Of a stretch of DNA of 64,000 nucleotides, positions 26,085 to 47,579 are shown piece by piece (position 1 is the first letter of the stretch; each line of letters starts with the position of its first letter). The position numbers were made by a program, and so were the translations under genes. Origin of the DNA: Syncephalis fuscata S228 (taxonomy: Eukaryota; Fungi; Zoopagomycota); the NCBI GenBank assembly GCA_025786725.1, contig JAHLTZ010000027.1, positions 1 to 64,000 of the forward strand. The letters run 5' to 3'. Under the pieces are notes generated by a model. The model made no database searches. It saw nothing but the letters and a program-made list of their open reading frames with translations, and was not told the DNA's origin.

Positions 26085-26957
26085 ACTACTGCTGTGAGGC
26101 CTTTCATCAGTATTGACCGAGCCTTTGTTGTGTTGCTTATAATTAATATGGCCATATGTTATATCAAAGGAATTTAAATTTGCTATAGTCCTAGTATTTA
26201 AAAATAACACTTGTTCTGTTTTCATGTCTTTCATTATATGAATAACATCACTCAAGGGTTTAATGATACTGCTTCAACCTTGAATTACTTTTTCTGGATC
26301 TGATTTTGCATTTAAACAGGTTAGCCTTTGATTTGTTCTTGGCAACGTTTGATAAACATGGATGATAGTAAATTTTAACCGTGCTTTTACCATTAAAACC
26401 GAATAATTGCAATAATGATAATATAGAATTATGCATGTGTTTCTAGAACAAAGAAATGATTCAAGTTTTATACAGAATTGGTACAACCACGGTGTTGAAC
26501 ATTGCGCCACGTGAATCTATGCGTGTTGCAATAACATGAATACCATAATATGTGTCTACCCATATTGCATTTGAACAAGCAACAATCAACCATCTCATTA
26601 AAACTGTGTTCATTGTATTAAGGATAAACATTTGTATACATTTAAATAGCATTTAGATGTTTACACATAAATTTTATTGCACTATTGTTCATCTACAAGA
26701 TTGCTAGCTACCAGTTCTCTAATATTGCCTGCACACCAATGCAAAAGGCCTATGTCACAAAACTAGTTTATACTTGCATGTGGCTTCCATGAAGCTATAC
26801 AACCATTTACTATATAATAATACGATTTAAATTTGTTGATAACACAAATTTATTGCTTTTTACTCTAGTCTTTAATATGTTATTTTCAAAATACCAACAA
26901 TTGGTGTTATTGCTATTTACTTGTATATTAATACAAATCAACTATGCTTGTGCAAAA
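26085..26957. repeat. ~870-bp near-identical inverted duplication of 46110-46982 (upstream region + signal-peptide coding start of receptors A and C)
   Basis: Mirror coordinates sum to 73067 throughout; identical ORF translations at 26274/46557 and 26461/46415; only a few substitutions. Confidence 0.95.
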
Positions 26958-28746
26958 GTTACTTTTTCTGATAGTACCAACAAACCCGTATCTTATCCTT
27001 TAACTGAGCTGCATTTTTATCCGGATTTCGACCATCGTCGTTATGAAGGCATTGCACTTGTATGGAAATTTCCTGGATATAAAGAACCAAACACAGAATG
27101 CTTTTTTCCGCCAGTTAATGCTTCCGATCCAGCAATTCAAAATATTGCTAAAAGCGCATTTAAATATCCAGACTTTGCGTTAATTGTAAATGATATAGCT
27201 GTTTTACGCAATGTATGCGATACCAAAGAACAAGTAAGCATTTTTATTATAATAGATAGTTAGATATACTAATTGTAGCTTAGATTGGTAAAGCAATGAA
27301 TAATTTGATTTGGCAACTATCACATGCAGGATTTCCTTCAGTCAAGTTGGTTATTTTATCTTCAGATTTGCCACAAGGTTTCTTTGTAAATCACAACTAT
27401 ATAACACTTTTTTCTGCAAATGTATACAGCGGATATGGAGAATTAAAATCAATTAAAACAGCGGTACTGAAAATACCCGAATCTCTTTTTAATAATACAA
27501 TAATTAAAGACCACACAAGCCTCCATTATATTGCTGAATTAGGTAAACCATTTAAAACTGCCATCATATCAATATTAAACTGTTAATAGAACCTGACCCA
27601 TGGAATGAGCTATTATTCTCGCACACACATATCGCTTACAAATGGACATATTTTACCTTGGTAAGCAGTAAAGTCAAACAAACATATATAATTCTTATTG
27701 TGTTGCTATAGGTATTGGGTGTTTTGTTGTATGCGTGTGCTCGTATTATAAACTGGCAAGATTGAACATGCTGAAGCGGAATTTACTTTTAGTTGCATTC
27801 GTTACCGGTTTTGTATACTGCATTTGTAAGTAAATCCAATATATTCTATAATATACAACTTATGATTATATACTAGTTTTTCTTATACACCTGGCTGCCC
27901 TACATAAAACATATGTATTACCGGCTTTTTTTAAAATTTACACTCTTTTAGCAGGAATACCTTTTGATATAATACTTTTGCATTGGTATGCTATTACTTA
28001 ATTGGTTATATGATGTTTAATGTTTAATTTATAGGTCAATCATTGGCAAAAATCTATTTTCAAAGATAACAAAGATAACTTTATGGCTTGTTATTATTGC
28101 TGATATTATAGTAGACATTATGCGAATTGTAGGCTTAACAATATTTTTTTATCAAAAAACAAACAGTTATATTTCATCTTTACTCAGTGTTATTTCTAGT
28201 GAATCTATATATATTACGCTGTCATGGATTGCTATTGCAACATTTTGTTTACTTTGTAAGTCAATATAAACTAAGATTAATTTAAGCTAACTGCTATTTA
28301 ATAGTTTTATGGCTTGGATCTATATTTTATAAGCTTAGGAAACATCCTGATGGCCGTCGTAAATTTACACAGGTAAAATATTTAATATAATTAATGTGTT
28401 AAATTATAGTACTTATATTCTACACTAGCTGGCATGCCTTACTGTCATAGCCTTTTTCACGTATCTAGTATTTCCGATTTGCAATATCTATATTATAAAA
28501 AAATCAACTCTCAAACCTCATGATATATTTAAAGCATACTTTATACTTGATACGGCCTATATGGTGCGTGCACTCATATTTTTATCGATTCTTGGTATAC
28601 AATGGCCACATTCACCGGAATTAACTGAGCCAAAGATACGAGAACCACTTGGTGGAATGACAACTGTTGGATACGATTCAAAAGTAGAGGATGCCCCAAT
28701 ACGTTGGCAGTTGACTCGTAAACTTACAAGAATAATTAATCGTTAA
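26877..28746 (+). CDS. Receptor-like protein copy A: signal peptide + PA-like ectodomain + 7TM (8 exons, appears intact)
   Basis: MLFSKYQQLVLLLFTCILIQINYACA signal; FALIV..C...EQ...LSHAGFPSVKLVIL; EPDPWNE linker; seven hydrophobic segments across GT-AG-spliced exons; tail KIREPLGGMT. Confidence 0.8.
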
Positions 28747-29870
28747 CGTACTATTATAAATAATCAGCCGACTTATGTTTTTTAAATAGCTAATAAAAAA
28801 TAAATAGTTTTTGCTGTATTTGATTACTCGGTTTATCCATGAATGGTTGTTGATAGTATTGTGAATATAACAAAATAGATTATAGTTAACAAGTTAGCCA
28901 GTCTACCAATCTTAAATAACCTATTTACTACTCATTAATAAATCTACAAAGCACAGCCAAATACAAGACCAGACAAACGGGATATTTTTGATTTGAATGT
29001 AAGTATAACTGCGCTAGTACATTTAAACTAAATAGGGCTTGACTGGTTAGCATTAATGCGGCAGCTACAGCACTTCTGGGACGAATAAGAAATGAAAGAT
29101 GATTTACAAGATTGTTGGTTAATTAGCACAGGCACATCCAAATCGATATGGGTTTTTATTGATGGACGCTGTATCCAAATGGCATTTAAAGCATCATTTA
29201 TTTGCTATTACCACTTTTTCATCTGCTACAAATGGTATTAAAATACTATTTATGAATCCGTTTCTGCGCTCAGACAGGCCAGTTGTTGGCTTGTTTACAG
29301 AACTATTTGCTAACTACCAGTGTCAATGGGTTTTTGGCTATGTTCTCGTGAGCAAATTTGTAAAAGTGCGATAATGGAATGTAAAGTTAGGCATAATTTT
29401 CAGAACAAAAAAACAACGCAAGCTGCATGCACAATTGGTACCATCATAATGCTAAACACTTTCCATGCAAGTCTATAGATGGTGCAAAATGTTTCTAAAT
29501 CCATTATATTGTTTTAATAAGGCTTATAATAATAGTTTAAATTCTGGCTATTCTAAACCAATGCATTTATTAAATATACGACAAAAGCAATATACATTTA
29601 CATTTAGAATGCTATTCTATGTAGCTTATGTAGGCGAATATGCATTCCAAGTGTAGCACTATTTGCATACAATAACATATGTTACATATAAACCTACTAG
29701 CTACCAATTATTCGATATTGTATGAAGACCAATATAAAAGACCTGTGCCACAAAGCTAGTTTGTATATGCTTGCGACTTTGCATGAAGCTATATGGCTAT
29801 TTACTATATAATAATACACTTCAAATCCACTGAGAATATAGCCTTGTTACTTTCTATTCTGAATTTCAGC

Positions 29871-31728
29871 ATGTTATTTTCAAAATACCAACAATTGGTG
29901 TTATTGTTATTTATTTGTATATCAATACAAATCAACTATGTTCGTGCAAAAATCACTCTTTTCAATGGTACCAAAGAGCTAGTATCTTATCACTTAACTG
30001 ATCTATACCTTCATCCCGAGTCTCAGCACGATCATTATGAAGGGATTGTAGTTGTCTGGACACACCCTATATATACAGAACCAAGCATAAAATGCTCTTT
30101 TCCGCCAGTTAATCACCGACCCAGCAATTCAAAATATTATTAATAATGCATCTAAATATCCTGACTTTGCACTAGTCATAGGTTATTATTATCGTTTACT
30201 GAGTTACTGTAAACCGAAGAGCGAGTAAGTGTTTATATTATAATAGATAGACATGTGCTAACTGTATTTAGATCAATCAAGCAGCAAATGGATTGATTCA
30301 GCAATCATCACGTATAGGACTTCCACCATTCAAGCTTCTTATTCTATCCTCATATGGTCACCACATTTTTATTTAGGTTACAATTGTGTTGCGTATTATT
30401 TTGATAAGTTACAGAATAGATTTTGAGTATCAAGCTCAATTAGAACAGTAGTAATGAAAACATTCAATTATAATATACCATGGGAAATATCTAAAAACTA
30501 TACAAAACTTCATTATACTGCTGAACAAGGTGAATTATATAAAATGCCTGCTATATCAATACTAAACTGTTAGTAGAACCCAATCCATGGAATGAGATAT
30601 TCTTTTCACACACATATATTGTCTACAAATGGACATATTTTGCCATAGTAAGTAATATAATTAAACACGTGTATAATTCTAACTGTATTGCTACAGGTGT
30701 TGGGTGTTTTGTTGTATGCATGTATTCGTACTATAATGCTAGCAAGATTTAAGCTGTTGAAACGGAATCTGCTTTGATCGCATTTGTTATCAGTATTATA
30801 TACTGTATTTGTAAGTAGATTCAATCTATTTTAAAATATACAACTAATGATTATATACTAGTTTTCCTTATACATCTGACTGCTCTACAAACAAGCTATT
30901 TACTATTTATTTCTTTAAGAATTTATACTTTTTTATCCACATTGCCTTTTGATATAACACTTTTGCATTGGTATGTTATTGTTAAGTTGGTTATATGATG
31001 TTTATGTTTAATTTTAGGTCATTCATTGGCAAAAAACTATTTTCAAAAAAAGCAATGATACCTATTTGGCTTGTTATTATTATTGATACCACAGTAAACA
31101 TTATGCGAATTGTAAGCTTAATAGGATTCACTTATTGGAAAAAAAATGATCATATTTTATCACTATTCGACACTTTTTTCAGTGAACTTATGCATACTGT
31201 GTTGTCATGGGTTACTATCGTAACATTATGTGCACTTTGTAAGTTAACATAAACTAAATATTTAGTTTAAACTAACGTATATTGAATAGTGTTATGGCTT
31301 GGATTTATAGCTTATAAGCTTAGAAAACATCCTGATGATCATCGCAAGTTTATACAGGTAAAGTATCTACTAGCTTTATTTTATTGATTTGCAATACTTA
31401 CCTATTGCACTAGTTGGCATGTCTTACTTTAATAGCGATTTTTACATATATACTATTTCCAATTTATTATATCAAATACTTTGATATTTTCTATACTTTA
31501 ACATCTGATGAAGTATTTAAAACAGATTTTATGTTTAATACAGCTTATACGATCCGTGCACTTGTATTCTTATCAATTTTTGGTATAAAACGGCCACACC
31601 CGCCAAAGTTAACTGAACTAAAGATACGAGAACCACTTGGTGGAATGACAGCCGTTGGATGCGATGCAAATGGAAAGGAAAGCGCCAATACAACAACAGC
31701 GAATTTACAATGTTACAAATGTGATTAA
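29871..31728 (+). CDS. Receptor-like protein copy B (tandem paralog of A; several apparent frameshifts, possibly a pseudogene)
   Basis: Same exon structure and signal peptide as A; EPNPWNEIFFSH; indels near 30113, 30211, 30358 and 30773. Confidence 0.7.
30553..31672. repeat. ~1.1-kb near-identical inverted duplication of 44381-45500 (TM half of receptors B and C, introns included)
   Basis: End coordinates sum to 76053; ORFs 31414(+) and 44639(-) are nearly identical; interrupted by a divergent block at ~31110-31205. Confidence 0.95.
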
Positions 31729-32124
31729 GCACCAAGTATTGGTGTAAATAATCAATCAAATTATATCATTTAGATGCAAATAATAAAAAATAAAAAATAA
31801 ATAGCTATTGCTGTTTGTAATTACCGATATCTTTATTCAGCATTTGATTAGCTAATTACGTACCGATGTTCATTAATAATATTGTAAATGTAATGAATAT
31901 GAGCTATTAACACGTTTAACATTATGCTTTATGTATAAAGTGCAGTTAACATGCTAGTCAGTTTATTGATAGCAATAATATAACGTTTTACAAATATTGT
32001 TGCACTAGCTTTGGATGATAGTAGTTTCAGCAATATGTAGTTTAAATTTCCCTTTTAATTAAACAAATTTCTGTAATTAAATAGCAGCATTCTCGATGAC
32101 TGCTTAATTATTAAAATCGTGTGA

Positions 32125-35100
32125 CTAAACACTGGCCTGTGTTTTCTTGCGACGAATTGTCCATCGGCGTGTTGATGGTTTACGCGCAGGTGCTGCCACA
32201 GGTGGCGGTGGCTTTTCCGGCAATGTTTGAGGCTGGTCAGCACTTTCACGACTGCCAGTAGATGATGTGGATAATCGTTTCCACGCAGTAGCAATTCGAC
32301 TACTTGTACTACCATTCTAATAATACACAAAACGTTATTTGCAATTCTATTAATCTAATTGGTTAATAAAACTTACCTCATTAGCCGAATTTGACATTGA
32401 TAGCGGTAGAGTAGGTGTAGAGGTGCCAGCATCACTATTAGTTTCTACTCCTCCACTACCACCTGCTGCTGCTGCTGCTGCCGTTGCTGCGGCTACTGCT
32501 GCGTAGCGGCTGCGGCAATCTCCTCCGCTTCAGAAATAGCACCGCCAGTAGGACGTATTGACTGACGATGAACACCAGGCAATGCACGTATCATGGGAGT
32601 GAAGGACGACGTCCACCTGGTGACAATGGAGCCGGACTTGGTGGTGGCACATAGCATAATACACGTTTGTTTTGTAAACGTTCAATTTCTTCGGCAAAGT
32701 TAATACGGAAGACTATAATTATTATGTTAGGTAATTGATTGTATTATTGCACACTTTACTTACATTGTAATAGATTTTCATGAAGTGGCACCATTTCTTG
32801 TGGCACAATGCGACCATGAATATCCAAACAACGACTAATGATTTCAGCCTATAATAAATTATAATTAATATTTAATTGTAGAAACAGTAGCTATTACTCT
32901 TAATCTTTCCTACCTGTTCTACGACTGCGTCGTCCAATTCACGAATATGAGAAGTTTTATCTGTATTTGCACGCAAATACATTTCATTCTTAAGGAATGC
33001 TTGCTTATATAGTTTAACACCACCATTAACTGGTGCATTCACTGCACCATTAAGCGACATTGTAAATGGATTGCAGCTAACGCGACCTGATCCTACGAAA
33101 ACAAGATAGCGTTTTTCCAATGCCAGTAATTCACGATTCTTGGCTCGCATAGCAACAACAGCATTTTCAATTGGTGACAATTCGGTAAGCGATGTCGATA
33201 CAACCTCGGCACGTCGAAGCATTGAAGGGAATGGATGTTCGGTGATAAGTACAGTCTTTTCCGTCCATAGTTCAAGGAATTCATTGCTTGTTTGCGTTTC
33301 ACTTGTAGCAACTTGTGATTCAGAAGGCAGTGCTAAATATAAAATTAGCATATTATTTAATAAATACTATTTACTACTTACCATCTATACCGAGTGGTGA
33401 ATCTAATTCAGCAATGGCCGCCATCATTGCTAGACTTGTGGGCGTTGCAGCTAGCGATATTGGTGGCATTGCTACTACTGCTTCACGTTTAAATGGACGT
33501 GAGAAGCTAAAGGTCATCACGTCATTGTGTTCGTAGTAAGCGCGAATAGCTGCTGGTACTAAATCGCCCTTAGCAAATACCGGTCGTGTACGATCAGGTT
33601 CTGGATGTACACTGGTGATTTGTACATATTGCAAATCGCCATTAATAATACGTTCATCGGGTGGTGCACTTGATTTCAATAGACGGGCCGCTGGATATTT
33701 GTTCTGAATGCGTTCGCAAAACGCACCAATCTTCTCCCATTCAAGGCCGCGATAAATGTACTGTTTATTACGCAGACCCGATGGGAAGGTTTTACCGTAA
33801 AAGCCAACGCGGAAATATTCGCTAAAGTAGCGTTCCTTATTAACAATATCCTCGTGAAGAGCTGCCTGCTGTCGTAGCATATCACTAAGTCGTGGATAAT
33901 CAAAAACTGTGTGTTCATAATGATATGCTAATTCACGGCACAGTTCAATAGCAAGCTCCCATGCTTGTCCAGCGGTAAAGTATTCTAATACTTGTAAGTA
34001 TAGCTGCTCTTTACGTTCAAATGCACTTTGTGCTGGTAATTGTAGCGCAGCAATAGCATCAACACGTTTTGTAAGCGACCATTCGAGTAAATCGGCGTGT
34101 AGCTTTAATGTAAGGCCAGCTTCAACCAGATTTTGATTACGTGCTTGTACACCAACCAATTGATGAACATACTTGACATAGATTTCATCTTGATCGATGT
34201 TCTTTACAAAGCGTAGCAATTTAAGCGTACCAACAATACGTTCATCTTCAAACTCGTCACCATTAGGCATGAACGAACGTGGAAGAGTAGTTCCAGGAAT
34301 CGACTAACATTGCCAAGAAATTCTTCAGCTTGTTGCATTAAATAATTGGATACTTGAGCTGAGACAAATTGCTGACGTAAATCGGCAATAAGCCATTGTC
34401 GTGTTTCCTCAGCGCCTGGTCGTTGCCAAACAGCTAGTTTATCAAGCGTATCCATACATTCAACTTCAGTTCGCTTCAGATTGCCGTAAATCGCATGTTC
34501 AGAATAACAAATACTAAACAGTACATTACAAGCACATTCACGCAGTACACGGCTTGTTGATAGACCAAGACTAAGAACCGGTCCAAGAAAACGCTGTGTA
34601 AATCGTACTTGATAGCCGCCAGTCCGTTGTCCACTATGTTCCCAACCAATAGATGACCAAGTTTCACGTAGTAATTGTGCGCCTAATACGCGCATATCAT
34701 CTCCGGCTAAACAGTCGGCCACCATGCGTTGTTGTGCCGTTAAATGGTCGAGTTGTAATTGTGGACAAGACAGTAGTCGAAGTAATACACGGAAGAACGC
34801 ACCCCATAAAGGCTGACGGAACTTATCAGCATTTAATGGCGGTGGTACGAATGCATCCATCAAGAGTAAAGCAATAGGCTGAAGTATGGTCATACTATTA
34901 CGACACACAACGACTGATGCATTGAACCAATTCTTTGGAAATACCGTCTCAGTAAGCATTGCTTCAAGCATTTCAAATAGACGCATTAAGAACACAACTG
35001 TTGGTTCTTCTCCTTCTATATGCAGCATACCTCTTAAGTAGCCAAGTAATTGATCTGATGTAGGTAATTCAAAGACAGCTAGAGCAGCGGTTGCCAATTC

Positions 35101-38100
35101 ACCCACGCCAGATAATACAGAAGAGGGTACAGTTGCCAAGTCGACTTCAGATTCACCGGCAATATCGCTAAGTGTTTCGTCAAATACATTGACCATTGAT
35201 ACTTTAGCAACACTGGGTATCTCCATATTCACAAGCTGTTCAAATAGCACTGTTAACTTGGGTAGAATAGTCAATACTGCAGTGATAGCATCGCCTAAAC
35301 TTGCTGTCTCAATGTCAGCATAGCCATTGATGCTTGCTGTCGTCTGGCCAAACTCGGTTTTAGCTGCTAATTTTGCCGTTAAAAAGCCATCAGTGGTCAG
35401 TGGACGTGTACGCCGATTACGCAATGCATCACGTAGCCGATCAGCAAGTCGAACAAGAATAGTAAGTGCTGTGCGTGCTGTTTCACGCCATTTTAGTTGT
35501 TTACTATCTGCTGAAGTCGGTGGCGATTCTAGCGTTTCCGATAGCCAACGAACAACGGCCTTTGTGATAATTGGACGTGCTCTACCATGATCCATTAGCG
35601 GTCCTTCAAGTAGTTCACCAACAGCACGTAGTCTTAGTCCACCTGTGGCAAATGAACGACGACCAACAGCATCAATAAATTCAACAGCCAATTGGGCAAC
35701 TTCTTCTGCACCAAGACAGCCCATTAATTCGGGTCCAAATGCACGATGGACACTACGTGCTGCAATGGTCTGTGCACCGATAACTGATTGCGGCTCAGTA
35801 ACACGCATTAAGCGAGTTAGTTCGGCAAATAGACCACGTAGCTCACTTAGGAATTCCTCTTCATGATGACTCTGTTCAGTATGTGACACTTGACGTTCAA
35901 GTTCATTAATGCGCTGAATAGCTCGACTACGCATAGCAAAGCCAATAAGTTCACTCCACACTTTGAGTGCAGAGCGGAAGGTGACTGCATGCTCAGGATT
36001 GCATGGATCATCGACAAATCGACGTAGTGTACCCAATAAATCACGCCATGCTTGTTCAGATCGCATATGACGGGCCAGATACACGGAAACGACCGGTTGG
36101 AAATTGTTGAATCGTCGATCGTTAACAATACCAAGCACGCGAATAATGGCCGTCACTGTTTGTGTGCTTACTTGACGAGCCGAATCGGCAGCGTGTAAAT
36201 CACGATACCAAGTACAGCCGAGTATTTCACAAAGTGCATCAAATACATCTTGTAAAAACTTAACGACTTCCATTTCATCGACAAATGCAAATTGATGCAG
36301 TATTGTTGTTAGATCACTGCGTCGATTACGTACTAATGTCTTCCATCGTAGTAGATTAATAAGTGCCGGTGCCTGTGAGTAATGTGTTGAACATAACAGT
36401 GATCGTACTACAAATGTATCCTTTAATGGCTGTGGCTTTGGCCCAGCCGCCGCCGCTGCCGGTGAGCTGGTTGTGCTTGCGGTAAGTCCACCCATAGTTG
36501 GTGATCCAAGTGGTGCATCCAGCGTAACAACACCATTGGGCATACCAAGTGAATCGGTGGCACTTTCATTGACAGATAGAACGAGTGCACCTTCACCAGA
36601 TACAACAGGTGCAATTAAACAGCGTAGATATACAACTGGACGTACAATACGTGCATCCCATCTGAATAAACTTAATTGACGTTCTCCATCTTTAAGTGCA
36701 CACCCATCGCCACCAACTAGGGGCAATACACCAAATGCAAATTGCTTCTCATCATTAATATCTGCACTGGCTCCACTATTGCCGCCACCAATAATACCGC
36801 CACTATTATTATTATTGCCGCCACCACTGCCACCAATAATGCCGCCACTATTGCTTGATGCACTAGTATTAACATGGCGGAATGAAAAGAATAAATGAGC
36901 ATCTTCAAATTGACCTTTGGGTATATCAAGCCTAAATGCTTCTTCCCAAACTGGTGCATTACAATGATGAAGCACTAGACTATTGAATGCAGTCGTTGTA
37001 GGTACATCGCCACTGGCTCGAGCAAGTACACCGCTAAGTACACGGCCGTCGGCATTACTTCGAACTTCAACACGGCATTCCACGCTACGTACTTGTCGTT
37101 TAAGTCCTTGGGTGAATTCACCGCCCACCAATCGAATGTATAAATGATTACGCGACATACCAGGTACCACGACATCTGGAAAGCCAAGACGAAGTGAACG
37201 TGATGCATCCAGTAGCCAGTTAGGATGAGCGCGGAATACTGCATTAGTATCGCCACGGAATAAACGCATACTAATACAGACGGCCTCAGCCTTGGGTGTA
37301 CGTGTGTAATCACTGGTTTGTCGCGCAATAAGTGCACGGTGTAATTCGGCAAAGCCAAGTTCAGCTGTTGGTACATAAATCGACATAATGTGTTCGCCGA
37401 CTTCTAATTCACCACGATCAGCCATTGCTGTGATATCTTGACCACGTAGTGCATCTCTTAGTGGCAATACGGCCACACCAATTGGTCGACGAATATCTGG
37501 CATTGATTTTGGATCTTGTGTATTTGTATCAACTAGATTGGACGATACTTTACGGCCATGGTGTTTACCAACAGATACGGCACCTCCTAGAATACCGCCA
37601 CCGCCACTATCTTTACTAGAATCACCAGCACCGAGCATCATATGGCCACGGCGCACCACACGACACACTAGGTATAGATCTTCTTCAGTCAATTCACGCT
37701 CAGTCAATTCTAGAAATACTGTGCGTAGTCGACCAATCTTGTCGTGGTCGGCAGCAACGCCATTCTCAGTCAATTCACAAAGATAACATTCGGTCAATTG
37801 ACGATCACCACGGTAATCATAGATCCAAAAGTACAATTCTACATGTTCACCTGCAGAACAAACGCTGGCTACAAATGCATTTAGATCAAGCGAAAGATGG
37901 TAAAAGGTCTGTGATTCAACTGGCATATCCCAGGCTGTTGTACGACGCGTTGCTTTAACTGCTGGTCCTCTAGCAGCTACAGTGGATAGTTGGTTGCTAT
38001 TAGATCCATGGCCGCTATGACTGGCATTACCAGTTGGTGATAATAGCGCTTCTCCTGATGGATTGCCATTGTTGTTACCTCCACTAGCAGTAGCTGATGA

Positions 38101-39714
38101 ATTAATTAAATTAATCGATTTAGGACGTAGGTTGCAACAAGTAAGTCGCAGATGTTCACGGTATAGTGCAACAACTTGTCCAAGTTGTCCAACGACATCA
38201 CCATCCGATTCACGGGCTGTTTGATCAAGTCCTTGTAGATTATTGCCATAGGCTACTAACTGAACCAGATGTTGACGTAGACGATGTAGACCATCCTGTG
38301 GTAATGCTTGAGCAATCAGTTGTCGACGGCCATGCAATACCTCAAACATTAGATCGCGTAATAATGCAAATAAAGAGTATCTTTGCTGACGTAGATATGT
38401 ATGTAAAAGTGAACACCATTCACGAAGTACTTGAGCCATGGCGTCGACCAGCGGTTCACGTCGGCCCATAACACTTACATCTCGTGGAATAGCTGGTACT
38501 GCTGGTAAAGCAACATGGTTTGGTCGAATACTAGTTGCTTGAAAGCTCATTGACCTTGCCTTGTGCAGCTTTTTCGGCTTTGTTGGCGTATTTCGAAATG
38601 AAGTCGATCGCTGCATAGTATACTCATTACTGATATCCGGCAGTGGATACGCGGCTACTTCATGTCCTGTACCAGGCCGACTCACCGATGCAGCTGCTTG
38701 ATTGAACAGTGATTCAATTGGATTTTGAATACCTTCAGGTGTCAATACACCTTTAGTTAAGTCATTCATATTATCTGGATTAATAGGTTGCCATGTATGA
38801 GCTGCTGGATCGTAACTATCACGTAGTGCTACGTGCGATAAAGGAAATATGCCCATACGTGGTGTTGTTTGTAATGGGAATGGCGCTATAACATAGCCAC
38901 GTATCCATTCGCCATTTCGTTCAAATGCAAATATATGATCACCTGCTTCCAATGGTAGCTGATAGACTGCACCTGGATGATTTGTATGTGGATTAGGCAG
39001 AAGAATAGGCTGTGTCAATTCTCCAATAGGTGGTATAACACGGCCATCTGTATTAGTATTTGTATCATTAATACTTGGCTCTAATAGTGTATATTGTGTA
39101 TAGGCAGAAGGAGTAAATGGAAATACGGCAATACCATGTAATAAACGAAGTAATGGTCGCCAGCACTTTGGTTCCTCTTCTTCTTCTCTAGAAGCCAGTA
39201 ATGGTGTTAAAGGAGCTGAAGTAACCGTTGGAGCATTAGTATTAAGTGTGGTATTAAGAAGTGTATTAGTTGTTGTTGTCGCTGTATCAGTATTAGTTTC
39301 CGTATCAACGTTGGCGGTAGTATCAGATATTATAGGTTCCGAAATAGTTGTAGTTACTGTATCAGTATTAACTTCTGATATGATTGAAGTCCTTGCAGAT
39401 AAAACTGAAGCTTTTGTTGATACAATTGAAGTTCTTGTCGATACGGAATCTGTAATGGAAGTAGGCGAATTTGGCGTCTCCAATGCTGATACTGAAAGTG
39501 CAGCCGAATTAAAAGACTCAACTACAGTGTTTGTAATAGGAACAACTGGTGGAGGTATCGACTCAATATCTGCATCGGAACATAAAGAAGCAACATTTGG
39601 ATCGGCCTCTGTGGCTAATGGCGAGTCGGGTTCATCAATTGAAGGGGCAAATGATGGTGAAGGTGGTAAAGCTTCATTGACAATAGAAGCCGCGTCGAAA
39701 TCTTCATCGGCCAT
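32125..39714 (-). CDS. DOCK-family (DOCK1-5/Dck1-like) Rho/Rac guanine nucleotide exchange factor
   Basis: SH3-like N-terminus (LEAGDHIFAFERNGEWIRGY...GIFPLSHV), C2/DHR-1 (LGFPDVVVPGMSRNHLY, HCNAPVWEE), DHR-2 (YFRVGFYG, ELSPIENA, LNGAVNAPVNGG). Introns at the 3' end; apparent 1-nt frameshifts at ~34270, ~32595 and ~32503. Confidence 0.93.
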
Positions 39715-40202
39715 AAGTTGGGTGTTTTCCTATCAAATTACGCACTTTGAATCGATTTACAAAACCTGACCGTCAATGTAACTAAATCATAACAATAACA
39801 ATAATAATTAATTAATACATAATTGTTAATATTGGTGTTAAAATAGCTAAATAGTATTGTCACACTAATATGCCATGCCAACAATTCGCCATCCTTAATC
39901 CATAGCTTTCAAGTCACTTGCAAATACTAGAATCTATATGTACATGCACTCTAATACATTATTGACATACAATCGTGACGTCTGTCAATTCATTTTATGT
40001 ATGCCAAGCCGATAAAGAATAGGATATTCACATCTAATGTAGCACTATAGACAACTTACGGTTTAACTATTAACAGTAAAAGGATGAAGAATAATCCTTT
40101 AAATAAACTGAAAGTGTATTTGACTGTTTCCAGTCGGACAATAGGCAGAATAGAATAGAAAAGCAAGTAGAATAAAATAACAGTAAGAAAGAAGATGAAG
40201 AC

Positions 40203-40224
40203 GTGTGTGTGTGTGTGTGTGTGT
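40203..40224. repeat. (GT)n microsatellite in the divergent DOCK/BRR6 intergenic region
   Basis: gtgtgtgt... run. Confidence 0.9.
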
Positions 40225-40620
40225 ATGGGCCATGCTTTCTTTATCCATATGATTAGAACATAAACGCATGACGTGCCCATCCAATCAATGTAGAGTAAAA
40301 TCAACTTAATCAAAAGCTACTTTTTGATTAAAATTCATTAGACTTCACTGTAATTAACTAAATAATTAAGTAACTAATTAAATAGTTAATTAAATAGTTA
40401 AGTAATTATACTTTTTTCTTTCTTTTCTATCATTACTGCTATCACTATATTAACCTATTGTGTTGTTGTTGTTGGTTTTATTATTGTTTATATACGTATC
40501 TATTGTAGTTCACATTGGTTATTAGTGACCAAGTGTAGTAAGAAGAAAGAAGCAACGAAAGCAATAGAAAGTATATATACACACGCACAGAAAGAGAGAG
40601 AGAACAAAAACTTGTAAGAT

Positions 40621-40967
40621 ATGGCCAATACGATGGACACCTCGTTAGAAAGACGTGGCCGAGCTGCACCTATGGAATTCGAGTATCAAATGCCACGTAA
40701 GCCTTCAGCGACCTTTAACCAAAGAACCTCCGCCAATACTGGTACATTGTTGTCACGTACATCACTACTTGCTCGTTCCAATACTGGTCCGCCTGACGCT
40801 GCTTCTTTTGCCGCAATGGCTTCAACCACTACTGATGTACCGGCGAGATCAGTACCCACCTTATCAACCACCACCATTACAACAGCATATTATTCTGATC
40901 AAGACGAAAACAATGACGCAGACTATAGCGATACATCGGTAGGTAACAGATGTGAATAATTGTGAAT

Positions 40968-41001
<34 letters not shown>

Positions 41002-42390
41002 AATAGATTCCATGTTAACTAGCAATTCCAAATAGAGAGGACGTGGTCGACACTTAGTATTGCCACAAGATCGTAATAACAGTAGTCGCAGTAGATCACG
41101 TTCTAGAGATAGAACGTCATCAACCGCAACAACATCAAACCAACGAAGAAAGAAATCAGCTTATACAGCTTATCGTGGTGGTTCATCTGTTAGAAAGTCT
41201 AATCGTCGACGTGATGCTAATACGGATCGTTCATCAAGTTGGAAGTATTGGTTTAATTATTTACATCCAAATAATCATAATATTGGACCAGCACTTAATT
41301 GGTGGTAAGTTAAAATGATGTAATAAATAGTATTATAAATACAATATTGTATTTTATAACGATATATAAATAATAGGACAATTAGTCGAATAATAAGCAT
41401 TGCTCTAGCATTGCTTGCTGTTAGAACACTTTATGTAGCTATTGAGACAGTACGTACAGATGTACAATTAAAGGCAAATGATCGTATGCTAGGTAAGTCA
41501 TAGTATAACTAATAAATAACAAATTTACTTATAATTTACAATGTTAATAGAGATTGAAAAAACAATTAGTTTTTGTCGGGCTGAATACGAAGGAAATAAA
41601 TGCGATATTCCTGATGGTCGTCCAATTTTACTAAAAAATTGCCCTACTTGGAAAGAATATCCTTTTTACTACTTAATTAGTCATTTAATAAGCTACCAAG
41701 TGTAATATATCGTTAACCAATAGATATACGTGTATGGAACAGGATTCAAGTGTGTTTGGAAGGTAAATTAATACATGATAAATTACTAATGGATACAATA
41801 ATGTTAATGCTAATATAATTAACTAATTTAGATCAAGACTTGTAGCTGAAGCATTTGCTGAAATTATCGAGGCATTTATGCAACCATTATCTATGCGTAC
41901 TATTGTAAGCAGTTATTAATGCTAATACAATTACTTTTATTTACATTATAATGTATATTAATACTATCCTATTTAGTTGATCTTTGTTCTAACTACCTTT
42001 GGTGTATTGGCTTTACTCAATATCATTTACACTCTATTTATTCGTAACTACAATTCACACCATCCTTCTTCATCTTCGGGCTATCCTTTAATGCAGCAAC
42101 ATCATACGCATCCCATGCATCTAGAAGGACCTAGTGGACAAAAATTAAGAATACAAGAAGTTTGGCATGAAACGGAAGTTGATCATGAAATACACTCAGG
42201 CGACAGTGAAGATGACAACGACGATCGCCGCTCTCGACATAATCGCTTATCGTCTAGGCGCGGTCGTAATAGTAATGGCACTAAACGGAAAGGACGACGA
42301 CAAGATCGAGCTAGTCATAGTCGTAGTCGTAGTCGTAGTCGTAGTCGTACACGAACCACTATACGTTATGTAAACGACACAGAATATTAA
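40621..42390 (+). CDS. Brr6/Brl1-like nuclear envelope protein (multi-exon, one AT-AC intron)
   Basis: N-terminal ERRGRAAPMEFE; four-Cys luminal domain FCRAEYEGNKC...NCPTWKECMEQD...SRLVAEAFAEIIEAFMQPLSMRT flanked by two TM helices. Confidence 0.85.
40971..40999. repeat. (AT)n microsatellite in intron 1 of the Brr6/Brl1-like gene
   Basis: atatat... run within intron 40939-41035. Confidence 0.9.
41657..41729 (+). other. U12-type (minor spliceosome) AT-AC intron, 73 nt
   Basis: 5' end ATATCCTTT, branch-like TCGTTAAC at 41710-41717, terminal TAC. Removal restores W-K-E-C-M-E-Q-D in frame. Confidence 0.85.
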
Positions 42391-42472
42391 ATAGGTACTA
42401 TATTATATTAAATATATATACTTTATATACTAGCACGACGACTGTAATTGTTTGTTAACATGTCATAAATGG

Positions 42473-44093
42473 TTATTGCGCGTCAATCATCTCCCATAGA
42501 CCACAGTCAACGCAGCCTTCTTCAGGTTCACATACTGGCACGTCATCCCACTTTTTAATTACTTCTTCAATAACATCCATAATACGATGGGTTCGTATAT
42601 CTGATTTCCATCCCCATTTTGCTGTAACATCATAGACACAGGTGCGTCCTGAATGGCATTTACTATTCAATCACATAAGTAAAAGTATTTGTTGTCTATA
42701 AAATACTTACGATTCCATTGCATAGCCTGCATAATAACACGAAGAGCCTGCACCCTATTATAAGTAATAAAAAACATAATATGTCAATGGCTATTTATGT
42801 ATTCAGTCGATATTACTACTTACTGTGCATACACCCATGAAAATAGGATCAGCAGTATGACCAAAATGCCAAATAGGCAGCTTTTTGTAATCAATGGCCG
42901 GTGGCATTGGTAAATGAAGACGACGAGCAGGTAATTGATCGCCAGGTGCCTCAAAGGTTACAGTGGGTATACGAAATACTTGACCAAGTAAAGCAGCCAC
43001 TGATCCACCTAATGAATGGCCCACCATCCAGATTTGAGCCTCTGGATAGGTAGCACTTAATTCATTAAATAGATTCTATTTATTAATAATAATTATTAGT
43101 AAAATCTACTTTGTTTTGTCTCTATTATACCTACAAGTGTCACCCCATAGTAAATATTATCCGGTGTTACACTTTCTTCTAAACATGTCTGGTTGCACTT
43201 ATTACCTGACATGTAGCAGCCACAACAGTTGACCAAGAGTAATCAACTCGGGCACAGCAGCACGATAACAATAAATTGTCCTTTTATACAATGTTAATTT
43301 ATTTAATAACAATCATTTATAATAACCACTTACGTTAAGCTTATCTCGTTCAGTCGATGGACCTCCACTGCCAAATAGACCAATACTTGTTCCCTTGATC
43401 GATATAATAACAATACTTTCACTTTTATCTACAAACACATAGCCTCGTAGTCCATCAGCTTTTTCTTCCCATCCAAAATCTTTAGTCTGTAAAGTAGATG
43501 GTTTTATTATTAAATTATGTTATTTTGTATATTCATATGTATCTTACCATGTTCCAGTCACCGCCTACATCGTGCCATTCAGGTTTGTTTAGTTCAATAT
43601 AGGCATTGTAGGTCATTTCGGCCAATGATACTATTGTATCACGATCAGTTACATCAGGCAGTACCGTTAACTCTTCTTCAGGGAGTCGGGCAAGTCCATT
43701 GGGAAGAAAACCGCCTCCCCATTGAACAGTAGAAATACGACGCTTAATCACATGACCACTTGAGAATACTGCTACCTTTGATGCATCAATAGGTGGTGAC
43801 AGTGTAGGCTTCTTCAGTCCAATGCTCATATTGTCAAAGACATTAAGGTCGCGACGGGCAAAAGCAAGAGCCGTCTTACTGAATGGTGGTGGTGGTGGTG
43901 CATAAAAGGTATGGCGAATATGAAGAGTGGTGTCAGGACTATTCTGTGCGTTGACCACGCCTGGCTTCAGCAATGGCTTTGATAGAATAGTTTGTCGAGC
44001 CGCATTGGCCGGTTCATGCGTACCGGCCAATATAGCAACAGCGACAATACTAATAGATGACAAATAGCTATACAAAGAGAGTGATGGTTGCAT
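42473..44093 (-). CDS. ATG15: Vacuolar/autophagy lipase (multi-exon; apparent frameshift ~43224)
   Basis: [83 protein letters not shown]. Confidence 0.93.
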
Positions 44094-44300
44094 TGATGCA
44101 ATTGAGTAAAAGATGAGAAAGAGACAATCGCAGTCCACATTGTGTTGGAGATCGATTTAATAAATAAATACAAAAGTTTTTAAAGTTTACAGTTATCGTG
44201 AGAAACCTTGACACCTTGATTCATGTAAATACTGATAACTAGACGCAGTAAACCACCTGTCTTATTTATTATTTACAGTGAGCAAATATAATTTAATTGA

Positions 44301-46190
44301 CTATCCATGCTGATGTTCAACGCTTAAATGCTTCTTTGCAAATTCACGAGTCGATTGCCAGTATGTTGGGATTGCCCCTACATTTGCATCGCATCCAACG
44401 GCTGTCATTCCACCAAGTGGTTCTCGTATCTTTAGTTCAGTTAACTTTGGCGGGTGTGGCCGTTTTATACCAAAAATTGATAAGAATATAAGTGCACGGA
44501 TCGTATAAGCTGTATTAAACATAAAATCTGTTTTAAATACTTCATCAGATGTTAAAGTATAGAAAATATCAAAGTATTTGATATAATAAATTGGAAATAG
44601 TATATATGTAAAAATCGCTATTAAAGTAAGACATGCCAACTAGTGCAATAGGTAAGTATTGCAAATCAATAAAATAAAGCTAGTAGATACTTTACCTGTA
44701 TAAACTTGCGATGACCATCAGGATGTTTCCTAAGCTTATAAGATATCAATCCAAGCCATAACACTATCCAATAGATGTTAGTTTAAACTAAACCATTTAG
44801 TTTATGTTAACTTACAAAGTGCACATAATGTTACGATAGTAACCCATGGTAGAACAATACATCTAATTATATCAAAGATAGCGTAGAATAATGATGCTTT
44901 ATCGTTAGTTTTGTCCAATAAATAAGTCCTATTGAGTCTACAATTCGTAAAATGTTTACTGTGGTATTAATAATAATAACAAGCCAAATAGGTATCATTG
45001 TTTTTTTGAAAATAGTTTTTTGCCAATGAATGACCTAAAATTAAACATAAACATCATATAACCAACTTAACAATAACATACCAATGCAAAAGTGTTATAT
45101 CAAAAGGCAATGTGGATAAAAAAGTATAAATTCTTAAAGAAATAAATAGTAAATAGCTTGTTTGTAGAGCAGTCAGATGTATAAGGAAAACTAGTATATA
45201 ATCATTAGTTGTATATTTTAAAATAGATTGAATCTACTTACAAATACAGTATATAATACTGATAACAAATGCGATCAAAAGCAGATTCCGTTTCAACAGC
45301 TTAAATCTTGCCAACATTATAGTACGAGTACATGCATACAACAAAACACCCAACACCTGTAGCAATACAGTTAGAATTATACACGTGTTTAATTATATTA
45401 CTTACTATGGCAAAATATGTCCATTTGTAGACAATATATGTGTGTGAAAAGAATATCTCATTCCATGGATTGGGTTCTACTAACAGTTTAGTATTGATAT
45501 AACAAGTATTTGAATTGTTTACCTTGTCCAGCAGTATAATGGAAGGCAGTGTAGCCGTTAACATTTTTCATATCTTTTGGAAAGATAGATGCCTCCATTA
45601 TTGCTATTGTTATTGGTTTTAATACCGGAAGCAAAATTTTCACATCGTAACTATTGCCTATAATATAATCGTAGCCTAAATAAAAATATGGTGGCGTATA
45701 TGATAATAGAATAAACAGCTTGACTGGTGGAAATCCTGCGCGCAATAATTGCCGCATCAATTTATCTATTGCTTGACTGATCTAAATTGCAGTTATTGTA
45801 TATATTTATTTTATACCATAATAAAATACTTACCTGTTCTGTGGTATCACACTTAGCAGAAAAAAGGTATTTAAACTTTACGATTAACGCAAAATCTGGA
45901 TAGCTAGATGCAATTTCAGCAATATTTTGGATCATTGGATCGGAGGCATTAACCAGCGGGAAAGAGCATTTTGTGTTTGATTCTGTATAATTAAGGAAAT
46001 TTGATACAAGTGCAGTGCCATTATAAGGACGCCGATGAGGCTCCGGATAAAGAAATGCATCGGTTAATTTATAAGATATTTGGTCGCTGGTGCCATTAAA
46101 AAGAGTGAGTTTTGCACAAACATAGTTGATTTGTATTAATATACAAGTAAATAGCAATAACACCAATTGTTGGTATTTTGAAAATAACAT
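44301..46190 (-). CDS. Receptor-like protein copy C (mosaic: A-identical upstream region/signal, unique ectodomain, B-identical TM half)
   Basis: Same 8-exon architecture; start nearly identical to A; 44381-45500 nearly identical to B; one apparent 1-nt deletion at ~44910. Confidence 0.8.
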
Positions 46191-47579
46191 ATTAAAGACT
46201 AGAGTAAAAAGCAATAAATTTGTGTTATCAACAAATTTAAATCGTATTATTATATAGTAAATGGTCGTGTAGCTTCATGGAAGCCACATGCAAGTATAAA
46301 CTAGTTTTGTGACATAGGCCTTTTGCATTGGTGTGCAGGCAATATTAGAGAACTGGTAGCTAGCAATCTTGTAGATGAACAATAGTGCAATAAAATTTAT
46401 GTGTAAACATCTAAATGCTATTTAAATGTATACAAATGTTTATCCTTAATACAATGAACACAGTTTTAATGAGATGGTTGATTGTTGCTTGTTCAAATGC
46501 AATATGGGTAGACACATATTATGGTATTCATGTTATTGCAACACGCATAGATTCACGTGGCGCAATGTTCAACACCGTGGTTGTACCAATTCTGTATAAA
46601 ACTTGAATCATTTCTTTGTTCTAGAAACACATGCATAATTCTATATTATCATTATTGCAATTATTCGGTTTTAATGGTAAAAGCACGGTTAAAATTTACT
46701 ATCATCCATGTTTATCAAACGTTGCCAAGAACAAATCAAAGGCTAACCTGTTTAAATGCAAAATCAGATCCAGAAAAAGTAATTCAAGGTTGAAGCAGTA
46801 TCATTAAACCCTTGAGTGATGTTATTCATATAATGAAAGACATGAAAACAGAACAAGTGTTATTTTTAAATACTAGGACTATAGCAAATTTAAATTCCTT
46901 TGATATAACATATGGCCATATTAATTATAAGCAACACAACAAAGGCTCGGTCAATACTGATGAAAGGTCTTACAGCAGTAGTTATTATTGAGATATGTAA
47001 TTTTTGAAATAATCAGCGTATTTAACAATATATATGTGGGTAACTAGTCATATACTAATTTATTAATTTTTACCATAGCAGTAGGTAATAGTATAAAATA
47101 CAATATAGTCTAAACAATGCGCAGAACTAGTAGCTTTGTCTGCATTTTATAATACTTAATAAGTATAGTGCCAACAGTCCTTCTATTGATAGGCTAATCA
47201 CAATATTATAAAGATGGTGTATTTATCCATTTGTCTAATATCATAATGATGCCAGTATGCTGATGGTCTATTTGAAAAAGTATAAAGCTACAGTAAATAA
47301 TACGCAATACTTTTGTGCTAATTTTAGGGTATTTAATATAAGCTGCATTATAGTGCTCAATCAGTAGCTTTAAAATTAATTGTATAAACCAGACGGTAAA
47401 TTGTATTGAAATATTTAAATAAGCAATACATCATAATAAAACAATTTGATCAGCGTATTATTTTAATTACTATTATATTATTATACACTAATTTGCTATA
47501 AATCAACCAATCTAACGTGTTAATCAATATTTATTTATAAACTGATAAAAATATAAGCTATTCATTGTATACTATACAC

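Follow-up and report, generated by a model that had tools for sequence, protein, structure and literature searches.

Mosaic gene copies in a clustered family of predicted seven-helix membrane proteins in the mycoparasite Syncephalis fuscata, probably shaped by gene conversion

Analysis of a 64,000-nt stretch of the Syncephalis fuscata S228 genome (assembly GCA_025786725.1, contig JAHLTZ010000027.1, positions 1–64,000; called the window below) showed that copy C, one of three paralogous membrane-protein genes in this stretch, is a patchwork of segments shared with at least five other copies of its family, arranged along the gene in the order A, F, own sequence, D-type, B, E, own, B and own. Copies A and B are encoded on the plus strand and C on the minus strand, and all three belong to a larger gene cluster that has probably formed by duplication and by repeated ectopic gene conversion between copies that are linked and similar. 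An original prediction, made from the sequence of the window alone, had described the locus as a possible three-gene receptor-shuffling system. The three paralogs A, B and C are indeed there, but at least seven close copies (A–G) lie on the same contig and roughly 30 loci are found in the genome.

The window is the start of a 394,702-bp contig in a genome of 29.4 Mb and 371 contigs. Whole-genome DNA searches located copies D (contig 75.1–77.1 kb), E (contig 78.1–80.1 kb) and F (contig 80.9–83.0 kb) on the minus strand and copy G (contig 136.2–138.1 kb) on the plus strand, and the cluster, one end of which is formed by the locus described here, continues past the window. Another copy, H, is found on a separate 11-kb contig and almost certainly represents a second assembly of the G locus. 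A last-exon profile built from twelve copies gave 40 matches genome-wide, which correspond to roughly 30 loci after merging split and duplicated ones, and more distant clusters of the same family are present on other contigs.

The segments of C were assigned by an eight-way alignment and by painting under a copying model. Read along the minus strand, the 5′ flank and start codon (46967–46185) are A-like with 99.7% identity, and the adjoining part, which encodes the signal peptide and the beginning of the ectodomain (46184–45705), is F-like with 99.3–99.4% identity; the partner in F lies outside the window (contig 82748–82270), and a divergent 24-bp patch is seen at 45888–45865. The second part of exon 2 (45704–45502, about 200 bp) has no near-identical partner among the copies examined. 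For exons 3–4 (45501–45280) D was chosen as the best donor by the painting (99.5%), with the same stretch being 95–100% identical in 100-bp windows in B, C, D, E, G and H. The next 306 bp (45279–44974) match B at 100% bar a 1-bp deletion at 45001, and are followed by a loop segment (44973–44796) with 97% identity to E and a perfect 101-bp run at 44896–44796. A stretch without near-identical partner (44795–44715) separates this loop from a second B-like segment (44714–44381, 99.7%). The tail (44380–44301) is nearest to D, G and H at about 83%, which is under the painting threshold.

This makes seven near-identical tracts within 2.7 kb, an unusual density. Tracts are found in every part, in the promoter, ectodomain and helices as well as in introns, tail and intergenic DNA. 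The predicted patchwork of A- and B-like parts was thereby borne out, with tracts of 97–100% identity against a background of 72–91%, and so was the near identity of the upstream region and signal-peptide start to A (26100–26946 versus 46967–46121, 99.8%). The transmembrane half of C, attributed as a whole to B, follows B at 45279–44974 and 44714–44381 (99.7–100%) but is interrupted by the E-like loop. The ectodomain had been taken as unique to C, which it is not, as 46184–45705 is 99.3% identical to F and only the about 200 bp of 45704–45502 are without a partner. Both the ectodomain and the loop are copied tracts, with near-identical partners outside the window in F and E. Moreover, each tract in C has donor-unlike sequence on both sides, and the transfer was therefore non-reciprocal and short.

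The extreme C-terminal tail, which had been described as closer to A than to B, is nearest to the D/G/H type. Two in-frame tail types recur in the family, one in A and E and the other in C, D, G and H, with the tail end residues being alike in C and H, and the distant clusters hold both types. In B and F, the last exon contains the same 1-bp insertion (window 31684; contig 80928), which places their tails in another frame with unrelated end residues.

The nested inverted repeat pairs that had been proposed for the window are present at the expected places. In a repeat search, the outer pair joins 26085–27190 of A to 46982–45877 of C (1106 nt, 94%); its near-perfect core, on the A side the plus-strand arm 26100–26946 with 5′ flank, start codon and signal peptide, contains perfect runs of 698 and 145 bp. 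The inner repeat is a set of inverted pairs that links 30542–31681 with 44372–45511 at 97–100%. Its first B-side arm (30552–31084, plus strand) comprises exons 3–6 with introns and is 99.2% identical to C 45501–44969, and the second (31339–31672, plus strand) extends from the end of exon 7 across intron 7 and over most of exon 8 and is 99.7% identical to C 44714–44381. In a three-way alignment, A and C are 100% identical from about 26139 to 26900, and B and C 96–100% over 30578–31070 and 93–100% over 31272–31670, with a patch of ∼80% between. The outer and inner pairs enclose 18.7 and 12.7 kb, respectively. This nested geometry arises because A and B are in tandem on the plus strand and C is inverted.

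The region upstream of A also resembles the region upstream of E (87.7%), and A was therefore probably the donor of the 5′ tract shared by A and C. We considered a transposon as the origin of this tract and rejected it, since the tract recurs upstream of family members only. A 1171-nt contig from an RNA-like public run extends on the A side from 26453 back beyond 26085 into the unique upstream flank of A, so that part of the shared 5′ tract (26085–26453) is transcribed at locus A; this transcript could be the 3′ end of an upstream gene or a long leader of A.

The pattern seen in C extends to the whole cluster. The tracts were identified by a strict ungapped search, since BLAST alignments of all copies against each other, filtered by identity, extended into diverged flanks and did not reveal them. 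This search gave 18 perfect tracts of 120–698 bp that connect copies of this contig. Both direct and inverted tracts occur, over distances of up to about 110 kb, and the copies have an overall identity of 72–91%, i.e., are 10–28% diverged. The same search found no such tract between these copies and the clusters located on other contigs. Longer shared regions are also apparent: the A tail and downstream region (28601–28900) is 99.7% identical to E (contig 78157–77858), and the adjoining spacer with the upstream region and 5′ half of B (28901–30551) is 97.7% identical to D (contig 77857–76215). Most of A and B (window 26667–31661) is colinear with E and D in inverted orientation (contig 80087–75115; 85.7% over 5049 bp). 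In a distant branch of the family on another contig, we also observed a 3.1-kb inverted duplicate (146.6–149.7 kb versus 114.5–117.7 kb, 98.8%, ∼30 kb apart), and a third copy has a perfect 211-bp tract in common with both arms.

Chance is excluded as the cause of the near-identical runs by permutation. A GENECONV-type test on 2013 ungapped columns with 903 polymorphic sites from seven copies gave global p values of at most 0.012 in 11 of the 21 pairs, and no run as long as the longest ones arose in 2000 permutations. H was left out of this test, because the near-identical G/H pair had dominated a first run. A test of the pairwise homoplasy index (PHI) type likewise showed a nearby-site incompatibility of 0.285 compared to a permuted mean of 0.493, a value not reached in any of 200 permutations when the sites were shuffled. 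Conversion of genes between the repeats, which the original prediction had offered as one of its mechanisms, is strongly supported by the 18 perfect tracts and the 11 of 21 pairs, and is more pervasive than one window shows.

Spliced transcripts of copy C are present in public data, which confirm part of its mosaic independently of the assembly. One of the public runs is RNA-like, with contigs that skip the C introns 45833–45782, 45522–45477, 45405–45357 and 45241–45191, all GT..AG. One of these contigs matches C's own part of the ectodomain (45523–45734) with no mismatch and continues for 25 nt across intron 2 into exon 3, and a second joins the F-like tract to exon 2 with 2 mismatches. A further RNA-like contig comes from a D-like copy, indicating that more than one copy is transcribed. 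The C gene (44301–46190, minus strand) has eight exons: 46190–45834, 45781–45523, 45476–45406, 45356–45242, 45190–45082, 45034–44816, 44763–44696 and 44639–44301, the last including the stop codon. The public model of C (P0037) is partial and ends in exon 5, its last residues being the start of that exon; a search for contigs on record that encode this model gave no match.

Several copies carry breaks of the reading frame. Copy B (29871–31728, plus strand) has a TCA to TGA nonsense change at 30424–30426, where D, G and H have TCA, along with deletions at 30113 (2 bp), 30355 and 30772 (1 bp each), and H has a TGG to TAG nonsense change. Judged by these substitutions, B and G/H are pseudogenes with true nonsense codons. 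Nearly all frame breaks in the cluster are 1-bp deletions. Copies A, E and C have only such deletions, one in exon 4 of A near 27751, one in E (contig 78422) and two in exon 6 of C (45001 and 44914), of which the one at 45001 sits inside the otherwise perfect 306-bp tract shared with B. The exons of G contain thirteen 1-bp deletions, one 2-bp and one 14-bp deletion, and its duplicate H has one. The differences between G and H (contig 134300–138700 versus 1–2700 of the 11-kb contig) are mainly indels, which suggests that the consensus is locally wrong on the large contig, too. We rejected the idea that all copies are pseudogenes, as the breaks are mostly 1-bp deletions, one of them in an otherwise perfect tract, and G and H differ mainly in this way. 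The 1-bp deletions in A, C and E may accordingly be assembly errors, and these genes possibly intact. Small contigs of 17 kb and 9.7 kb are 96–99% identical to parts of larger contigs with several 1-bp indels in every pair (13 gap openings versus 9 mismatches in one of them), and look like redundant, poorly polished sequence and not like separate loci. The unique DNA between the repeats is well assembled, as indicated by an unbroken open reading frame (ORF) of 1836 aa for a DOCK-family protein.

The family is evolving fast under weak constraint. With exon codons pooled in two groups, the ratio of nonsynonymous to synonymous substitution rates (dN/dS) between copies is 0.7–1.1 in the ectodomain and 0.45–0.75 in the helices. 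In each protein, a signal peptide precedes a PA-like ectodomain of ∼190 residues, which is followed by seven helices and by a short tail. Analyses at full length were based on family proteins from the databases. In an AlphaFold model of the 499-residue member P0003 (predicted local distance difference test, pLDDT, 72.5), a signal peptide is followed by an alpha/beta ectodomain and seven helices at residues 216–454. Comparison of the helical part with rhodopsins and G-protein-coupled receptors gave Z scores of 14–15, which is about background for helical bundles, so that no receptor subfamily is assignable. The ectodomain folded alone (pLDDT 77.8) is best matched by PA-domain ectodomains in Foldseek, with ZNRF3 at the top (E = 7.6e-5, TM score 0.37–0.46). 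In an exhaustive VIA-align search of 48,161 chains, which is independent of Foldseek, eight of the nine best matches are PA-domain proteins, with Z scores of 5.7–7.2, whereas the tool advises caution under 8; the remaining match, a fish PNGase, was not placed. Pfam gave nothing meaningful for ten exon translations and no match for ten full-length family proteins. Of the predicted receptor type with a PA domain and seven transmembrane helices, the helices are recovered in the models and a PA-like fold is suggested by them, but there is no match to the Pfam PA family and the structural scores are modest. The label “PA-like plus seven helices” seems fair, with modest support from these models.

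The PA domains most similar to the predicted Syncephalis ectodomain fold are those of ZNRF3/RNF43, GRAIL and the plant vacuolar sorting receptors. In contrast to these proteins, which combine the domain with a single membrane helix and RING or other modules, the Syncephalis proteins are predicted to carry seven helices after the PA-like domain, and unlike in ZNRF3-type PA receptors their ectodomain has no sequence-level match to the Pfam PA family.

In the history that we favor, the cluster would have grown by tandem and inverted segmental duplication, and a break in one copy would be repaired from a similar copy, leaving tracts of roughly 100 to 850 bp. The nested inverted repeats would then be a by-product of this duplication and conversion history and of gene orientation, and not a dedicated switch, although occasional crossovers between them could invert 12.7–18.7 kb. 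Directly observed are the mosaic with its statistics, the spliced transcripts of C and the true nonsense codons that make B and G/H pseudogenes; the mode of repair, the donor side of each transfer and a possible advantage for the fungus are inferred. Several observations weigh against it. The public DNA runs are thin, with contigs of 166–454 nt, and none spans a junction of C, so that part of the evidence for the mosaic comes from a single assembly. Local indel errors occur in it, with 38 gap openings and 20 mismatches between G and H over 2.7 kb. As none of the close copies is free of frame breaks in this assembly, it is uncertain which of them still function. Furthermore, the dN/dS of the ectodomain is compatible with diversifying selection, and true pseudogenes (B and G/H) beside a transcribed mosaic copy would also fit a donor-archive model. 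One noisy contig from the DNA runs across position 45000 matched no copy and was set aside.

The unspanned junctions, together with the redundant small contigs and the local clusters of 1-bp deletions, could mean that C is a chimera of A, B, E and F reads made by the assembler or polisher. We consider this very unlikely. As no tract is longer than 850 bp and each has unique sequence on both sides, a chimera would have required some eight double switches, all of them precise. Moreover, RNA-like contigs, which stem from another run, connect the F-like part through the 24-bp patch and C's own part to exon 3, the sequence of exons 1–2 is identical in the public model P0037, and the mosaic pattern recurs in all copies. 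A programmed inversion, of the shufflon type raised in the original prediction or of the flip-flop type, would recombine promoters, ectodomains and tails by flipping the 12.7–18.7 kb between the nested repeats. Two near-perfect inverted pairs of about 0.85 and 0.5 plus 0.33 kb do flank 18.7 and 12.7 kb, and homologous recombination between inverted repeats of comparable size inverts DNA in other fungi, as in the MAT flip-flop of methylotrophic yeasts. Neither a recombinase between the repeats nor a short conserved crossover site was found, though. Among the eight ORFs of at least 90 aa at 31.8–44.3 kb that were scanned by Pfam, small exons not being scanned, three are DOCK and five have no Pfam domain, and no common motif at ten tract borders of C is obvious by eye. 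A crossover in the A/C arms would exchange identical promoters and signal peptides and hence create no new protein, and one in the B/C arms would swap only tails, with the pseudogene B as the partner. The nesting follows from gene order, and tracts of the same kind join direct repeats and copies up to 110 kb off, which is beyond what inversion explains. With tracts in all parts and orientations, a shufflon-like or cassette mechanism is unsupported by these data, and we regard a programmed switch as extremely improbable.

The cluster could also be a selected generator of diversity, in which silent or broken copies (B, D, F and G/H) serve as an archive and segmental conversion builds mosaic receptors in a few transcribed copies such as C, for host sensing by the mycoparasite. 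Such a role would agree with the composition of C from segments of at least four other copies, with the true nonsense substitutions in B and G/H, of which B yet shares perfect tracts with the transcribed C, with an ectodomain that evolves near-neutrally or faster (dN/dS 0.7–1.1 versus 0.45–0.75 in the helices), and with the restriction of all named family matches to one genus, whose members are obligate mycoparasites. Against it, the tracts show no preference for exposed parts, as promoter, introns, helices, tail and intergenic DNA are included, and the transcription of a D-like copy gives no sign of a single expression site. As the same features are expected from neutral birth-and-death evolution with conversion, we consider a selected generator unlikely, and duplication with recurrent conversion remains our preferred explanation of the cluster.

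Among known systems, interlocus gene conversion, e.g., in yeast subtelomeric families, leaves the same signature of short, non-reciprocal identical tracts in diverged paralogs, with the nearest relative changing along the gene. As in other clustered families, conversion here is limited to linked and most similar copies, and intact genes and pseudogenes occur together. Compared with the known conversion families, the Syncephalis family is undescribed, and the tracts in C are unusually dense and come from five source copies. The Trypanosoma VSG mosaics, Borrelia vlsE, Pneumocystis msg and the conversion of chicken immunoglobulin pseudogenes share with this cluster, here in a parasite as well, that pseudogenes have perfect segments in common with a transcribed mosaic. 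In contrast to VSG, vlsE and msg, no single expression site is seen in S. fuscata, the tracts extend beyond exposed parts, and the product is a seven-helix, receptor-like protein and not a coat. The bacterial shufflon of IncI plasmids, with the recombinase Rci and sfx sites, likewise has inverted repeats that flank segments for alternative protein ends. In S. fuscata, the repeats are long homologous gene pieces (0.2–0.85 kb) on a eukaryotic chromosome, and no site-specific recombinase or short crossover sites were found. The mating-type flip-flop of Ogataea and Komagataella is similar in its kilobase-scale inverted repeats around more than 10 kb with ordinary genes, whereas here there is no evidence for two orientations or for a position effect that would make inversion meaningful.

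Each of the paralogs A, B and C is split into eight exons by short introns with GT..AG borders. The exon borders of A (26877–28746, plus strand) were taken over from the RNA-supported model of C via the eight-way alignment. Its exons are 26877–27233, 27284–27542, 27590–27660, 27712–27825, 27877–27985, 28035–28255, 28305–28372 and 28429–28746, the last including the stop codon, and all splice sites are GT..AG. Between the repeats lies the DOCK-family gene (32872–39714, minus strand), whose 1836-aa ORF (34204–39714) is unusually intron-poor for this genome. Another ORF (33374–34270) overlaps it by 67 nt, indicating an intron or frame break at this position. Just downstream of C, a 201-aa ORF without Pfam match is encoded on the minus strand (43533–44138), and an RNA-like contig of 1472 nt with one mismatch (at 43808) covers 43600–44084 in this downstream gene.

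The last-exon profile retrieved only 33 proteins from 1.84 billion representative proteins, and all 16 matches whose names were looked up belong to Syncephalis fuscata, S. plumigaleata or S. pseudoplumigaleata. No description of this membrane-protein family or of the clusters in this genome was found in the papers that were searched. Syncephalis is a genus of obligate mycoparasites and S. fuscata parasitises other fungi, which agrees with the parasite context assumed in the original prediction.

Conversion among clustered paralogs is a textbook mechanism, and the value of our finding lies in the case itself, a membrane family of roughly 30 loci without Pfam match in a barely studied obligate mycoparasite, with dense and recent mosaicism. 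For genome annotation, the frame breaks in this cluster are largely single-base deletions, and such genes should not be called pseudogenes without polishing of the assembly. If the receptors sense the host, the cluster would be a natural place for fast-evolving recognition functions in fungus-fungus parasitism, and if it does act as a generator of diversity, it would correspond, for fungal receptors, to the building of mosaics in VSG or msg.

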